Below are positions 2,728 through 46,187 of a stretch of 61,972 bases of DNA, piece after piece. Within the stretch, counting starts at the first letter, position 1. Every line of letters begins with the position of its first letter. The stretch is from Octopus bimaculoides (Eukaryota), in the NCBI RefSeq assembly GCF_001194135.2, contig NC_068987.1, forward strand, positions 37,438,867-37,500,838. The letters are read 5' to 3'. Both the position numbers and the translations under genes were made by a program. The notes beneath the pieces are model-generated. The model searched no databases and had not been told where the DNA came from. It saw nothing but the letters and a program-made list of their open reading frames with translations.

Positions 2728-2880
2728 ATTTCTTGGAAAATATTGATCGGGCCAATCAGTTTTTGAAAATGAAAATGGTCGGAATAATATCGCGAACAAG
2801 TGATGATGAAGATCTTTTGTCAGATGCCGGAAGCGGAAATGGTGCGCCCGTTTCATCGAAACGCAATTTATACCTTTATA
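2728..2880 (+). CDS. Putative internal coding exon (phase 1-1) of a host gene, probably extracellular: (D)FLENIDRANQFLKMKMVGIISRTSDDEDLLSDAGSGNGAPVSSKRNLYLY
   Basis: Branch-like CTAAT, then TTTCTCTCTTCGTAG acceptor (AG 2726-2727) and TA|GTAAGT donor (2881). Length 153 nt, only one frame open, unique non-repeat sequence. Confidence 0.65.
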
Positions 2881-3373
2881 GTAAGTGTTCCTTCGCCAAT
2901 AAAACTTTATATTATATACGCATATGTATGTAAACACACACACGCACACACACACACACACGCACACACACACGCACACACATGCACACACACGCGCGCG
3001 CGCGCACACACACACACATATACATGTGTGTGTAAGTGTATATGCATATACATATTTCACGTTAAGTAACTTGATCTGAGATCGTGTGCTGAAACAAAAA
3101 CAGTTACAGCGAGGAAGGTGTTTATAAGCCATTTGAAAACACACTATTATATTATTTCCCATAAATGGTGTACAAAGAGGGGGACAGCACAAACAAATTT
3201 GAGGTCGACAAATGAGATAAAAATTTACATGGGATATGTGCTTAATCGAATGATAAACAGAAACAATAATTACAGACACAAGAAACAAATGAGACAAAAG
3301 TAAACAGGTATGCTCCGACCCCACAAGCCCTGTCTTTTCGTCGACACCTTGTTTTTTTTCCTTTATGACGCGT

Positions 3374-6300
3374 TCACGCAGGGTCTTTCCCACCCAGCAT
3401 CAGTGCAACACGCATCCATCGTTTTTTAAACACACTCTCAGACAGACATCTTATTTCCAACCCCATTTTTCTTTTCAAGTGACACTTAAAAAAGTCCACA
3501 TCTTGGACAGGTCGACGGCCCAGGCTGGCCGTGTCTGGTGAGTTTATCCCGAACCGGTAAAGGTCCTCTGTAATACTGCCAGGCCAAAGACTTTTGGAAG
3601 TTATCCAGTGTCTTCGGCCCGAGTGTTCTTCGGAACTGGTTGTCCAACAGAATATCATCGAGACCCAAAGTCCTTTCCAGGCCATCGTCATTTCCTACCT
3701 CTACCAACCCTCTATAAAAAAATGCGGTGGTACCGAGACCGCTGGCATTGCCCGAGTCCTGGAACTGGAGGAGTGCCGCAAGGCACTCCGTATANNNNNN
3801 NNNNNNNNNNNNNNNNNNNNNNNNNNNNNNNNNNNNNNNNNNNNNNNNNNNNNNNNNNNNNNNNNNNNNNNNNNNNNNNNNNNNNNNNNNNNNNNNNNNN
3901 NNNNNNNNNNNNNNNNNNNNNNNNNNNNNNNNNNNNNNNNNNNNNNNNNNNNNNNNNNNNNNNNNNNNNNNNNNNNNNNNNNNNNNNNNNNNNNNNNNNN
4001 NNNNNNNNNNNNNNNNNNNNNNNNNNNNNNNNNNNNNNNNNNNNNNNNNNCTCCGTATACCATGAAGCCAACTTTGATCTACGAGTAACCCAGTTTTCTC
4101 CAACGCCAAAACCGCTGATGCCGGGGAACAACCGTCTAGCGAGCGGAGATCACACCCGTTCACCATCCAGGTAAATCCAGAGGTGCCTCAGCCCCAACGC
4201 GTGTCTGCGCATCATCAGCCATGGCATCCCCAACCCACCCTTCAAAGGCTCCTGGCAGCAAATAGAACGTCTTACAAGTGGGGTGGCGCCCTTCCACAAA
4301 AAGCGAAAGATTAGCCTCTCCAACTTGCTTAACCACAAACGTGGACAAGGAACGATGGTCAGGCGGCAGGTGATGACCGATGCGATAAACACATTGGCCA
4401 CCTCCGCCCTCCCTTTCAAGGACAGCCACCGCCAAGACCAAGTTTTGACTATGTGGCCCAACTTGCCCGTTACCTTAGACCAGTTCTTTTCTATTTGGAG
4501 ATCCGGACCAATCCAGATTCCTAGCAACTTAACCGGGCCCTCCGTCCAGCGCCCTACAACGCTATTCAAAGGCATCGACTTGCTCCTCCAGGTGCCGAGT
4601 TGCAAGCCGACTGATTTTTCCCGGTTAATCTTTGCTCCTGCCACCGTCTCGTAAACCTTAATGGTTTCACCTACTTGATGCAGGTGTTCCATCTTGGTCA
4701 CGATGATAGTAATGTCATCCGCGTACGCCGTAGCAGATCCTCCACCTTCTGGGTTCGTCGGTATGTCACTCAGCTTTCTCAGCAATGGCTCGAGAGCCAT
4801 TACGTATAAAAGAGGAGAGAGTGTACACCCTTGGCGAACCGACCGTTTGATACGGAACGGCTTAGAAAGAAAACCGTTTACANNNNNNNNNNNNNNNNNN
4901 NNNNNNNNNNNNNNNNNNNNNNNNNNNNNNNNNNNNNNNNNNNNNNNNNNNNNNNNNNNNNNNNNNNNNNNNNNNNNNNNNNNNNNNNNNNNNNNNNNNN
5001 NNNNNNNNNNNNNNNNNNNNNNNNNNNNNNNNNNNNNNNNNNNNNNNNNNNNNNNNNNNNNNNNNNNNNNNNNNNNNNNNNNNNNNNNNNNNNNNNNNNN
5101 NNNNNNNNNNNNNNNNNNNNNNNNNNNNNNNNNNNNNNNNNNNNNNNNNNNNNNNNNNNNNNNNNNNNNNNNNNNNNNNNNNNNNNNNNNNNNNNNNNNN
5201 NNNNNNNNNNNNNNNNNNNNNNNNNNNNNNNNNNNNNNNNNNNNNNNNNNNNNNNNNNNNNNNNNNNNNNNNNNNNNNNNNNNNNNNNNNNNNNNNNNNN
5301 NNNNNNNNNNNNNNNNNNNNNNNNNNNNNNNNNNNNNNNNNNNNNNNNNNNNNNNNNNNNNNNNNNNNNNNNNNNNNNNNNNNNNNNNNNNNNNNNNNNN
5401 NNNNNNNNNNNNNNNNNNNNNNNNNNNNNNNNNNNNNNNNNNNNNNNNNNNNNNNNNNNNNNNNNNNNNNNNNNTGGGCAAAGTGCTCCTGAAACGTCTG
5501 ACACATCTCCTCTGGTTCGTTCACCGTATCACCTTGTGAGTTCACCACAGATTGAATTGTGGAATCATTTCCACGTTGGGCTTCCGCAACTCGTGCCCAT
5601 CCAGCGGCCCTGATGCCCTCGCTCCCCATTGCACGAAGTCTAGCTCTGACGATACAACCCATATGCTTGGCTTCGAGGTGCTGGTTTAATTCCAGTCTCT
5701 TCACCTTCACCTGAGATGCGTCGCCAGCCCTCATGGCTTCTTCTAATGCCTTAACTAAGTCCATTTTCTTCTTATGCCTTCTAGCCACTAAACCTGTACT
5801 ATATCTAATAGACTCAAATTTGATGGCTCTTTTGAGGGCGTACCACCATTTGTTGTTAATGATGGTACCAGTTAATGCCCTCTGTATTATTAACCTAATC
5901 CTACTCCTGTACTCCTCAATAGCCAAATGGGTTTTATTGAGTTTCCAGTAGCCAGACCCTCGCTACTTAACTTATCTAGATGCAGTTTGCATGTGATCAT
6001 TTTGTGATCACTGTAACTGACCAGATGAAGTTGTGGACACGTAACAAGTTCTTTATCTATTTTTCTAATAAGGATTCTATCTATGTAAGACTTAAAAGAC
6101 CCGTCGCTATTTTACCACGTCCACTGAGAAGCGTTCAGGAATTCCAGTCGGCAGGGATCTACTAGCTGAAAGCGACTTAGTAGATCATGGAAGCCACTGT
6201 TCGGTTTCCTAGAATTAGAGCCAATACTATCCACTCGCGCATCGAGAATAGCATTGAAGTCACCTAACACAACTATGGAACGTGACGTACCCAGAAACTT

Positions 6301-6580: not shown

Positions 6581-7766
6581 CTAAACTACGTGACGTGACG
6601 TCGTTAAGGAAACGGCCCTGCTTCCAGCTCGATTGGGCGCCTTCGCTTTCTTGGGAGGCCGAGGTTCGATTCTCTCTCCTTCTTCTCTGAACGTACTTGG
6701 CCTCATTTTTCTTTTTAATTCTTTCATTTTCCAATCCTCCTTTGGGATTGGCGTATCGCTTCGTGCGCCCTCGTCTTCTGACGACACCTCTCGCAGTTGT
6801 ATCTTTCTTTTCTCCTCCTCCTTTTTGCAGTCTTGTCTTATGCCACACAAGAAACATCTCGGCTGGCGACCCTCCACCATGACTGCTAGACGGGTCTCCT
6901 CAACTGAGATGAACTCAGTTATGTCTTCTAGTGTTGCCTGTTCAGCCTGGATAGTGATTTTAATGCATTGGCCATGCCAGTTTTGGGCTTCCATTACTTC
7001 TGCGTCCAAAATTGTGATTTTTTCCTTCAAACCGTCTGTTACAGCTGCCACCACCCACTCTGGATCCATCTCTGGAGGCACACCTTTGATGTTGATTTTT
7101 GACGTCCTTCTACCCATGTAAATAGGTAGAAGAACAACGTCGTCGGTTTTTAAAGGGTTTATGGAGTGGAGACGGACCAGTTCCTCGTCTCCATCCTCAC
7201 CTCTATTGTGGAAAATTTCTTCCCTCCTGTCAAATATTTTATGTTTTGCCATATTGGCTTTAAACATTTTTCGACCTCTTTTTCTACCACAACATCGATC
7301 TTCTTTTGTTTCACATTCCAGGTTTGAATATTATTGTTTTTTTTTCTCTGTATTTTCTATTATTTCCTTTGGGGGTTTTCACTCTTGTTTCGTAACCATC
7401 TCTTGTAAGTAATTCTTTATATTTGTCTAGATTTTCCACATTAATATAAAGATTTTTTCCACCTGCGGCAGCAGCGAAATTTATAGTTGTTCTTTCGTTT
7501 TCATTATCGTTAGTTGCCAAACTTGCTACCTGAATATTTCTTCTTATATTTGTTCGTATTTTCTGTGCTTCATCGTCCGATTCTATCAATGTGTTCTCCA
7601 CTATTCTTTCCAACTCCTCTTCAGAAATGCTGGCTTCAATGCCTGCCATTGTTTTGGTTTTCCCCACACGGGGAGAAACCATAAACAATTTCACGTACAA
7701 AAACCAGAAATAACAATAAAGTTTAACAAATTTTCCACAAAAATAATCACTCCTCCACGACAACAC
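6581..7766 (-). pseudogene. Tx1-like ORF1 (RRM-like region plus degenerate zinc knuckle), frameshifted
   Basis: ORFs 7311-7766 and 6581-7267. KINIKGVPPEMDPEWVVAAV and PRCFLCGIRQDCK (knuckle lacking the His segment) lie upstream of the EN domain. Confidence 0.7.
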
Positions 7767-11520: not shown

Positions 11521-12475
11521 NNNNNNNNNNNNNNNNNNNNNNNNNNNNNNNNNNNNNNNNNNNNNNNNNNNNNNNNNNNNNNNNNNNNNNNNNNNNNNNN
11601 NNNNNNNNNNNNNNNNNNNNNNNNNNNNNNNNNNNNNNNNNNNNNNNNNNNNNNNNNNNNNNNNNNNNNNNNNNNNNNNNNNNNNNNNNNNNNNNNNNNN
11701 NNNNNNNNNNNNNNNNNNNNNNNNNNNNNNNNNNNNNNNNNNNNNNNNNNNNNNNNNNNNNNNNNNNNNNNNNNNNNNNNNNNNNNNNNNNNNNNNNNNN
11801 NNNNNNNNNNNNNNNNNNNNNNNNNNNNNNNNNNNNNNNNNNNNNNNNNNNNNNNNNNNNNNNNNNNNNNNNNNNNNNNNNNNNNNNNNNNNNNNNNNNN
11901 NNNNNNNNNNNNNNNNNNNNNNNNNNNNNNNNNNNNNNNNNNNNNNNNNNNNNNNNNNNNNNNNNNNNNNNNNNNNNNNNNNNNNNNNNNNNNNNNNNNN
12001 NNNNNNNNNNNNNNNNNNNNNNNNNNNNNNNNNNNNNNNNNNNNNNNNNNNNNNNNNNNNNNNNNNNNNNNNNNNNNNNNNNNNNNNNNNNNNNNNNNNN
12101 NNNNNNNNNNNNNNNNNNNNNNNNNNNNNNNNNNNNNNNNNNNNNNNNNNNNNNNNNNNNNNNNNNNNNNNNNNNNNNNNNNNNNNNNNNNNNNNNNNNN
12201 NNNNNNNNNNNNNNNNNNNNNNNNNNNNNNNNNNNNNNNNNNNNNNNNNNNNNNNNNNNNNNNNNNNNNNNNNNNNNNNNNNNNNNNNNNNNNNNNNNNN
12301 NNNNNNNNNNNNNNNNNNNNNNNNNNNNNNNNNNNNNNNNNNNNNNNNNNNNNNNNNNNNNNNNNNNNNNNNNNNNNNNNNNNNNNNNNNNNNNNNNNNN
12401 NNNNNNNNNNNNNNNNNNNNNNNNNNNNNNNNNNNNNNNNNNNNNNNNNNNNNNNNNNNNNNNNNNNNNNNNNNN

Positions 12476-12640
12476 TATATATAGGAAGAATTCACAAAAA
12501 AAGACAACTGACGAAGACAGGTAGTGTAGAAAACAAACAGATGTATTAGTATAACGCTCGGGAGTTGAAAAAGTCTTTAACGTTTCGAGCCTACGCTCTT
12601 CCACAGAAAGGAACACAGAAAGAAACAAGGAGAGAAAAAA
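12476..12640 (-). mobile_element. Penelope-type terminal-repeat (pLTR-like) fragment with hammerhead-like motif
   Basis: Same family as 23720-23880. Contains GAGCGTAGGCTCGAAACGTTAAAG. Confidence 0.6.
12575..12610 (-). ncRNA. Minimal hammerhead-like motif, core variant CUGUGGA
   Basis: CTTT-CTGTGGA-A-GAGC(GTAG)GCTC-GAAA-CG-TT-AAAG. Helix I is 4 bp, helix II is 4 bp, helix III is palindromic ACGT. Core A6 is replaced by U. Confidence 0.5.
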
Positions 12641-43875: not shown

Positions 43876-44654
43876 TACAAATATATGCATACAAAGAATA
43901 CATATATGCATATATATATATATATATATATATATTTCATTTTTGTGAGTTCGTGTGTTGAAGCATATTCTGTTGTCTGNNNNNNNNNNNNNNNNNNNNN
44001 NNNNNNNNNNNNNNNNNNNNNNNNNNNNNNNNNNNNNNNNNNNNNNNNNNNNNNNNNNNNNNNNNNNNNNNNNNNNNNNNNNNNNNNNNNNNNNNNNNNN
44101 NNNNNNNNNNNNNNNNNNNNNNNNNNNNNNNNNNNNNNNNNNNNNNNNNNNNNNNNNNNNNNNNNNNNNNNNNNNNNNNNNNNNNNNNNNNNNNNNNNNN
44201 NNNNNNNNNNNNNNNNNNNNNNNNNNNNNNNNNNNNNNNNNNNNNNNNNNNNNNNNNNNNNNNNNNNNNNNNNNNNNNNNNNNNNNNNNNNNNNNNNNNN
44301 NNNNNNNNNNNNNNNNNNNNNNNNNNNNNNNNNNNNNNNNNNNNNNNNNNNNNNNNNNNNNNNNNNNNNNNNNNNNNNNNNNNNNNNNNNNNNNNNNNNN
44401 NNNNNNNNNNNNNNNNNNNNNNNNNNNNNNNNNNNNNNNNNNNNNNNNNNNNNNNNNNNNNNNNNNNNNNNNNNNNNNNNNNNNNNNNNNNNNNNNNNNN
44501 NNNNNNNNNNNNNNNNNNNNNNNNNNNNNNNNNNNNNNNNNNNNNNNNNNNNNNNNNNNNNNNNNNNNNNNNNNNNNNNNNNNNNNNNNNNNNNNNNNNN
44601 NNNNNNNNNNNNNNNNNNNNNNNNNNNNNNNNNNNNNNNTATATATATATATAC

Positions 44655-45348: not shown

Positions 45349-45881
45349 ATAATGCTGACCGTCCAAATGTGTGTTGCTATCTGGGACGAGTAGCTGGTGA
45401 ACGTGGTTTCCACTGCCATTCCGATGTCTATAAAGCCAGATACGACAAACGAAACCAGAATAGAATTCAATGGCTGAGAAAACATTTCACAGACAGCAGC
45501 AATGGTGGCAACTCTCAACTGAAATTCATTCGCAGGAAATTCGATGTGCGTGGTAACCGCCATTTGTCCAGATCAAGCAAGGTATCTCCTCTTTATAGAA
45601 TCTACAAAGACCACAAGAATGACGATGATGATGACGACGGTAGTAGCACGAACTATAACGGAAACGACTTAGAAAGGAAGAAAGTATGGGAGGAAAAGAA
45701 TGCAATTAAATCGTTGATGTTTAATTTTCAAAGTTGCGTCTTTCGAAGACCCCAAGATTTTCATCGATGCTGCTATACAGCCAGCTATCGGAAACAACAA
45801 ATGTACCGTTTTCACCGGCACAAACACTTCAGTCACGGTTACAATTCTGTAAACGGGCACGTGATAAACTATTTTTATTAA
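45349..45881 (+). CDS. Putative terminal coding exon: anaphylatoxin (ANATO)-like six-Cys module with a long insert, host gene of unknown identity
   Basis: Acceptor TTTTCAAATTCCCTTTTACAG (AG 45347-45348), phase 1. 533 nt open to TAA 45879-45881 in unique sequence. CCYLG-x9-C…C-x7-FHRCC. Candidate AATAAA at 46330. Confidence 0.75.
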
Positions 45882-46187
45882 AAGATACTATACAGTTTAC
45901 ATATATATATACATATATATATANNNNNNNNNNNNNNNNNNNNNNNNNNNNNNNNNNNNNNNNNNNNNNNNNNNNNNNNNNNNNNNNNNNNNNNNNNNNN
46001 NNNNNNNNNNNNNNNNNNNNNNNNNNNNNNNNNNNNNNNNNNNNNNNNNNNNNNNNNNNNNNNNNNNNNNNNNNNNNNNNNNNNNNNNNNNNNNNNNNNN
46101 NNNNNNNNNNNNNNNNNNNNNNNNNNNNNNNNNNNNNNNNNNNNNNNNNNNNNNNNNNNNNNNNNNNNNNNNNNNNNNNNNNNNNNN

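Follow-up and report, generated by a model that had tools for sequence, protein, structure and literature searches.

The DNA at positions 45349–45881 of a 61,972-nucleotide stretch of the Octopus bimaculoides genome, to which we refer in its full length as the window, raises the question of what kind of protein ends in six cysteine residues arranged as CC-x12-C-x106-C-x10-CC and marked by the signatures CCxxG and FxxCC. An earlier note, made from the letters of the DNA alone, viewed this region as an anaphylatoxin-like (ANATO) module that is split by a 106-residue insert rich in dibasic sites, that is possibly processed like proinsulin, and that might represent an unrecognised secreted signalling or matrix peptide. 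Our computational follow-up identifies the region as the terminal exon of a gene for a secreted protein belonging to an ancient, unnamed bilaterian family; what is new is this family, not the insert.

Window positions 45349–45881 match (100%) the RefSeq gene LOC106874468 of O. bimaculoides, whose 275-residue product is listed as an 'uncharacterized protein', and they specify the C-terminal 177 residues of this product. The exact protein is on record solely in the genome. Its gene consists of three exons that are spread over 85.9 kb of chromosome CM046607.1 and separated by two introns of ~42.6 kb each. Coding exon 1 (L012 10001–10141, from CM046607.1; residues 1–47) lies outside the window, ~40 kb ahead of its first base, and provides the signal peptide, a hydrophobic sequence of the form MINSLVKFCELASALIFLLLL... 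Since this exon ends inside a conserved F-D-D-F-L motif (FDDFL at residues 46–50), the motif is interrupted by intron 1. Coding exon 2 (2728–2881, forward strand; residues 47–99), which was located by tblastn and through its splice sites (acceptor tcgtag; donor gtaagt following an exonic a), has split codons at both ends and contributes the end of the FDDFL motif, a helix, an acidic SDDEDLLSDAGSG stretch with Ser83, and the dibasic pair K92-R93. The last coding exon (45349–45881, forward strand; residues 99–275 plus stop codon) opens with the bases at behind the acceptor ttttacag, with a codon split into 1 + 2 bases, is closed by a TAA stop, and holds the whole six-cysteine domain together with a basic, His-rich tail; position 45349 is a true exon boundary. 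When the reading frame is followed from position 45351, it yields 176 residues, NADRPNVCCYLGRVAGERGFHC...FQSCVFRRPQDFHRCCY...NYFY, before the stop.

The window is AT-rich and studded with N-gaps that border on microsatellites of the (TA)n, (CA)n or (TATG)n type, examples of which are found at 11560–12480, 43990–44640 and 45926–46187. As the last of these gaps starts 45 bases past the stop codon, the 3' UTR of LOC106874468 is incompletely assembled. Intron 2 (2882–45348, forward strand; about 42.5 kb) is crowded with microsatellites and gaps in the assembly and includes a fragment of a reverse transcriptase; the latter is a broken ORF with N-gaps on the reverse strand (3486–5926) that matches the Pfam model RVT_1 (E = 6.7e-14) and probably represents a retrotransposon in decay. 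Next to this fragment are two further ORFs (228 and 151 residues; 6581–7267 and 7311–7766, reverse strand). Neither has a significant Pfam match, the best being a sub-threshold one to DDE_Tnp_1_6 (E = 0.005), and they may be part of the same or of another mobile element.

A word-indexed search returned three proteins: the octopus protein itself, one from Argonauta hians (69% identical; P0002, labelled 'LOC115214538 [Argonauta hians]' at its source, with the organism name as written there), and a more distant 256-residue sequence from an RNA-seq assembly. These three cephalopod proteins have all six cysteines in common and differ in the length of the loop between the two cysteine halves. An exhaustive HMMER search with a profile built from these three proteins only then yielded 43 proteins at a cut-off of E≤1e-3, with E values between 4e-17 and 1e-3 for members in other phyla. 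One sequence of 1414 residues with 22 matched stretches (P0038) was discarded as the spurious translation of a tandem repeat. Members are found among the Mollusca (Haliotis, Patella, Solemya and cephalopods, including Argonauta), Nemertea (Lineus), Annelida (Owenia, Capitella), Chelicerata (Limulus, Larinioides, Oppiella, Brevipalpus), Myriapoda (the centipede Strigamia) and Hemichordata (Ptychodera, Glandiceps), and insect and vertebrate members were absent among the sequences recovered with this profile of three cephalopod proteins. Every named member is annotated as 'uncharacterized' or 'hypothetical'. Pfam scans assigned no family to the octopus exon, to 10 full-length relatives or to 31 domain sequences, the only recurring match being a sub-threshold one to DNA_primase_S that we take to be a chance hit. 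No paper found in our literature search mentions the locus or accession names of family members, and the literature on ANATO modules in invertebrates does not describe such a protein.

The members share an architecture that consists of a signal peptide, the motif Y-x-x-F-[ED]-D-Y-L with a helix behind it, a linker that is acidic or rich in Ser/Thr, and a cysteine domain of ~90 residues. A scan of 45 sequences for the motif in the form F-[ED]-D-[YF]-L detected it in 29 of them and in most of those complete at the N-terminus. For the domain, the family consensus reads CC.LG.LAG.KGFHC...FYAARI..RN.NRAHNRK..F.G......YG..LM.TF..CV......FHKCC, and the octopus protein fits both [FY]Y..[RK]...RN.NR and F..C......F[HY].CC with its segments VYKARYDKRNQNR and FQSCVFRRPQDFHRCC. 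The cysteine spacing across the family is CC-x12-C-x41..45-C-x9..14-CC (modal values 12/43/10); x12 occurs in every member, and a central loop of x41–45 in 29 of the 37 genuine matches that show the whole cysteine framework.

On the translation of 45351–45881, the cysteine pattern and the CCxxG and FxxCC marks are exactly as the earlier note had described them for this last exon of LOC106874468, and so are the KR, RK, RRK and RKK sites (residues 132–133, 142–143, 160–162 and 208–210) and the D6 tract (residues 190–195; window positions about 45621–45638), which is encoded by a GAT/GAC micro-repeat. The note had named a cysteine pattern not kept in orthologues as grounds for refutation: in 31–35 aligned homologues from several phyla, the six cysteines, the Gly of CCxxG (CC+3) and the Phe of FxxCC (CC-3) are all invariant, and the pattern is thus not a product of chance. 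Viewed over the family, the invariant positions comprise the six cysteines, two glycines and two phenylalanines, and the loop motif RN.NR is nearly so.

All parts of the octopus domain lie on the forward strand. Its first cysteine half, C107-C108...C121 (CCYLGRVAGERGFHC; 45372–45416), is delimited by invariant columns and comprises helix 1 (residues 105–116 in an AlphaFold2 model) and a turn. It is followed by a conserved first loop part (residues 122–151; 45417–45506) that contains KR132-133 and RK142-143, that corresponds in our alignment (A4) to the family motif FYAARI..RN.NRAHNRK..F, and that is modeled as helix 2 (residues 123–147, pLDDT 80–94). Next comes a cephalopod-specific expansion (residues ~152–213; 45507–45692), whose boundaries are approximate and which faces gap columns in all non-cephalopod members. 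The second cysteine half (45693–45773) encompasses the last part of helix 3, in which C228 (codon 45735–45737) lies, an FHR sequence, and C239-C240 (codons 45768–45773) in helix 4. The basic, His-rich C-terminal tail (residues 241–275, ...RFHRHKHF...NYFY; 45774–45878) continues helix 4 at its start and ends in a YFY terminus that is kept among cephalopods. The AlphaFold2 model of the octopus protein, for which the input alignment held 35 sequences, positions four helices at residues 105–116, 123–147, 204–231 and 233–260; its pLDDT exceeds 90 in the cysteine-holding blocks and drops below 50 for residues 159–192 and 196–201. A family member with a short loop was likewise modeled with four helices. 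Both models predict a four-helix domain, at a confidence that is moderate overall (mean pLDDT 70 and 75) and from shallow alignments. A Foldseek comparison of both models with the PDB gave no match below E = 6, and sequence and profile searches of the PDB produced chance matches only (RLP24, ribosomal protein S9 and CHCHD5, E 0.3–2.3).

Placed in its family context, the 106-residue segment between the third and fourth cysteines does not support the earlier note's reading of an insert that splits the module. The family norm is already x43, with FYAARI..RN.NRAHNRK..F.G....YG..LM.TF in this position. The first ~30 residues of the octopus loop (HSDVYKARYDKRNQNRIQWLRKHFTD...) are the conserved FYAARI..RN.NRAHNRK..F helix and its last ~15 residues (...EKNAIKSLMFNFQS) the conserved YG..LM.TF..C segment, so that about 43 of the 106 loop residues belong to the conserved domain and only about 62 are lineage-specific and poorly conserved. 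In the family alignment, residues ~152–213 (window positions ~45507–45692) have no counterpart outside the cephalopods; the RRK160-162 site, the D6 run and the RKK208-210 site all lie within this low-complexity stretch. A comparison of insert lengths among mollusc orthologues, which the earlier note had recommended, shows that loop length varies considerably: it amounts to x77 in the decapodiform sequence P0003, to x68 in P0004 from Sepia esculenta, and to x106–107 in octopods. The middle of the loop is Gly-rich in the two decapodiform orthologues and of mixed charge in the octopods; octopus and Argonauta are 49% identical over residues 159–201, compared with 79–80% in the helices, and against P0003 the octopus middle loop aligns mostly with gaps and is essentially unalignable. 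The loop of the bivalve Solemya velum is enlarged at the same position and is very basic (RSRSRSRPRSRRRS), with a C3–C4 spacing of x76 in a Solemya-like sequence. The two sequences concerned, P0024 and P0036, stem from Solemya velum and a similar RNA-seq sequence; P0024 seems to be without the second cysteine half, perhaps through a gene-model error. Apart from the GAT/GAC run, no internal DNA repeats were found behind the loop. On the basis of the alignment, the low pLDDT, the Solemya sequences and the D6 micro-repeat, we regard the presumed insert as a lineage-specific, low-complexity enlargement of a long conserved surface loop. AlphaFold2 predicts this cephalopod enlargement to be disordered, and the helices and the six cysteines are not affected by it.

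Two other explanations of this loop have to be weighed against its interpretation as an enlarged surface loop. One holds that the exon is an artefact of annotation or assembly, or that the center of the loop is an unrecognised intron, and we give it next to no credence. In-frame GT...AG pairs are indeed available from the candidate donors at 45553 and 45582, and the window derives from a gap-rich draft assembly. However, the acceptors with which these donors would pair are purine-rich and devoid of a pyrimidine tract, the Argonauta protein is colinear across the whole loop (50% identity, no gaps), and the exon boundary at 45349 recurs in the gene call on a decapodiform contig (P0005). Expression evidence is provided by the cuttlefish orthologue P0004 from Sepia esculenta, for which an uninterrupted 720-nt coding sequence including the loop is present in ten RNA-seq contigs of 1.1–3.3 kb from ten sequencing runs; the coding sequence of a second decapodiform sequence is uninterrupted as well. 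Two of the ten runs are published Sepia esculenta larval transcriptomes (PMC10466719). Since the cuttlefish mRNA contigs retain the loop, it is not an intron, and the removal of the insert by splicing, against which the earlier note had cautioned, is excluded. According to the other explanation, the protein is a prohormone from which convertases excise the loop at dibasic sites to leave two disulfide-linked chains, as in insulin. The likeness to proinsulin-type precursors is real insofar as the protein has a signal peptide and two cysteine-bearing segments with a variable stretch between them that contains four dibasic sites; the AlphaFold2 model shows the loop as disordered and accessible in its middle, with RRK160-162 inside the disordered part, and every cephalopod compared has a further dibasic site ahead of the domain. 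Nevertheless, we find such processing unsupported and consider it very unlikely. With 23 Lys and Arg residues among its 106 positions, the octopus loop is, contrary to the earlier note, not enriched in dibasic sites: shuffling of its own composition leads one to expect 4.8 adjacent basic pairs and 3.8 dibasic sites, and 6 (P = 0.32) and 4 (P = 0.59) are observed, respectively. The sites are mostly not conserved either. Argonauta has RQ in place of KR132-133, the decapodiform sequence P0003 lacks both RRK and RKK, and RK142-143, the sole dibasic site common to the three cephalopods compared, corresponds in the family alignment to a position that is frequently non-dibasic (NAK, NMK, NLK, NRQ, NSK). 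Moreover, two of the four sites, KR132-133 and RK142-143, are embedded in the confidently modeled helix 2. In all other phyla the intervening segment is short, consists mostly of a conserved helix and ranks with the most strongly conserved stretches of the domain, which is the opposite of what one sees in a C-peptide. The cysteine pattern, too, is unlike that of insulin and relaxin: insulin-like hormones have C...C in the B-chain and CC...C...C in the A-chain, whereas the octopus halves read CC-x12-C and C-x10-CC. If a convertase acts on this protein, the K92-R93 pair directly in front of the domain, which is present as K/R-R throughout the cephalopods and unconserved in other phyla, would by its sequence be a more plausible site than the dibasic sites within the loop.

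Is the six-cysteine domain, then, truly homologous to the ANATO module of the fibulins and of complement C3/C4/C5, though highly diverged from it? If so, its C3–C4 loop would have grown from ~12 to ~43 residues early in the bilaterians and once more in the cephalopods, and the domain would work as a free-standing anaphylatoxin- or fibulin-type module. Four features of the family argue for this relationship: the cysteine order CC...C...C...CC, the CC-x12-C spacing, and the invariant CCxxG and FxxCC marks are all as in ANATO. ANATO modules are cationic, helical, extracellular and held together by three disulfides, and the same properties can be read from the AlphaFold2 models and the charge of the domain, with its disulfides presumed. 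In an hhalign comparison, the family profile matched fibulin-1 module 3, which we take to begin with CCLLGRAAQAQGQSC and to proceed through ...C... to FRACC, with a probability of 67.5% (P = 5e-5), and of 73.8% after deletion of the loop, for a template that consisted of a shallow alignment of eight fibulin-1 fragments and for a module chosen in advance for its likeness, which introduces a selection bias. P values ranged over 3–5e-5, and the match is limited to 21–22 columns of the first cysteine half, with the pattern CC.LG..A...G..C. When the cysteine columns were fixed and all others shuffled, 2 of 200 controls reached the real score. These likenesses are opposed by several negative results and by structural differences. 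Pfam PF01821 gave no match at E≤10 in more than 40 sequences, among them three octopus constructs from which the loop had been deleted, and thus the comparison with the Pfam ANATO model that had been proposed in the earlier note comes out negative both with and without the insert. Likewise, searches of the PDB with family profiles, whether intact or loop-deleted, retrieved neither fibulin nor complement chains at E≤10, although fibulin-2 (8r5w) is present there, and Foldseek retrieved no ANATO structure with either AlphaFold2 model. Because a fibulin-1 profile itself detects only fibulin-2 in the PDB and misses the complement chains, such negative searches constitute weak evidence. The framework differs as well. 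ANATO modules have ~10–13 residues between C3 and C4 and 6–7 between C4 and the final CC, spacings that we also found in real fibulin-1 sequences; the corresponding values here are 41–45 (68–107 in cephalopods) and 9–14 (modal 10). In ANATO, C4 and the final CC reside on the same last helix, with disulfides C1–C4, C2–C5 and C3–C6, and our models place them on separate helices. Furthermore, the domain occurs here singly and free-standing in a small protein and not as a module of a large mosaic protein. What stands of the ANATO-like assignment is the order of the cysteines, their first spacing (x12) and the two family-invariant signatures; the Pfam, PDB and Foldseek searches and the two other spacings do not bear it out. 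Taken together, the sequence similarity suggests at most a weak kinship with ANATO, and true homology is possible but doubtful; we do not classify the domain as ANATO. We attach a similarly tentative, if marginally greater, likelihood to the notion that the family constitutes an unrecognised ancient bilaterian class of free-standing, cationic extracellular proteins with four helices and three disulfides, either as stand-alone sister or ancestor of ANATO or as an independent class of ligands with a receptor or glycosaminoglycan partner of its own, to which the octopus loop adds a cephalopod-specific function.

What such a domain might do is suggested by its charge. The core is net positive in 45 of 45 members (mean +9.9, range +3 to +23, pI 8.6–11) and contains 2–9, usually 5–9, His residues, and 29 of these 45 proteins have an acidic N-terminal region. 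About 14 members, among them molluscs, the nemertean and hemichordates, contain a GSG sequence with acidic neighbors ahead of the domain; many linkers follow the consensus [ED]-G-S-G-[SD]-[ED], and its octopus form, SDDEDLLSDAGSG, resembles a glycosaminoglycan attachment site. The octopus Ser-Gly with its acidic flanks, DDEDLLSDAGSG, falls into a region of low pLDDT (41–51) in the AlphaFold2 model. Acidic clusters next to a Ser-Gly xylosylation consensus characterize part-time proteoglycan cores and glycosaminoglycan-bearing prohormones, and the acidic G-S-G motif (EGSGSE in many relatives) on a predicted flexible linker is a likeness to small secreted proteoglycan cores. Its differences from such cores are that the motif is a candidate by sequence only and not universal in the family, being missing from many members (arthropod linkers are Thr-rich, and that of Owenia is without SG), and that the conserved folded domain is without counterpart in known cores.

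The explanation that we judge, by a modest preference, to be the probable one unites these properties: a secreted protein of an ancient family would present a disulfide-locked, cationic helical bundle that binds polyanions, and the loop would serve as a spacer. Within this proposal, the protein would be exported and, to judge from its motif, carry a glycan on its linker, probably chondroitin or heparan sulfate attached to Ser83. Three disulfides would lock the helical bundle. From its composition and architecture, the cationic bundle would be the working part, acting as an extracellular ligand or a matrix-associated factor through the binding of glycosaminoglycans and possibly also of microbial surfaces; its polyanionic partners would be located in the matrix or on the surface of cells or microbes. 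For the octopus loop, the proposal envisages a flexible spacer that is tolerated, not a connecting peptide that is excised, and in cephalopods a convertase acting at K92-R93 may free the domain from the acidic N-terminal part. The same cleavage is central to another explanation, in which the cationic domain is an antimicrobial host-defence polypeptide that its anionic pro-region neutralizes until K92-R93 is cut, as in defensin-type precursors. The uniformly cationic, His-rich core behind a mostly acidic N-terminal region and the dibasic site at the cephalopod junction would suit such a role, and the complement anaphylatoxins, with their similar framework, are reported to be antibacterial. We nonetheless consider it unlikely: the motif FYAARI..RN.NRAHNRK hardly varies between hemichordates and spiders, a conservation unusually high for an immune effector; tblastn detects a single locus of the six-cysteine gene in the window, with no tandem expansion of the kind typical of antimicrobial peptide genes; and the dibasic site at the junction is unconserved outside the cephalopods.

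Returning to the secreted, polyanion-binding protein that we favor, that part of the earlier proposal is upheld which saw in this exon the C-terminal, cysteine-framed domain of a secreted, non-complement and uncharacterised protein; the signalling or matrix function that it envisaged falls within the conditional reading given above. The insert itself is an ordinary low-complexity expansion of a loop. Provided that it is what it seems, the family deserves attention instead, as it is conserved and secreted, extends from hemichordates to spiders and octopuses, and is without a name, a Pfam model or a literature, although nothing about it so far suggests an unusual mechanism. Families of this kind are a source of missing invertebrate ligands, matrix organisers and immune effectors. 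Should the link to ANATO be true, this family would also have implications for how the anaphylatoxin and fibulin type-I module originated.
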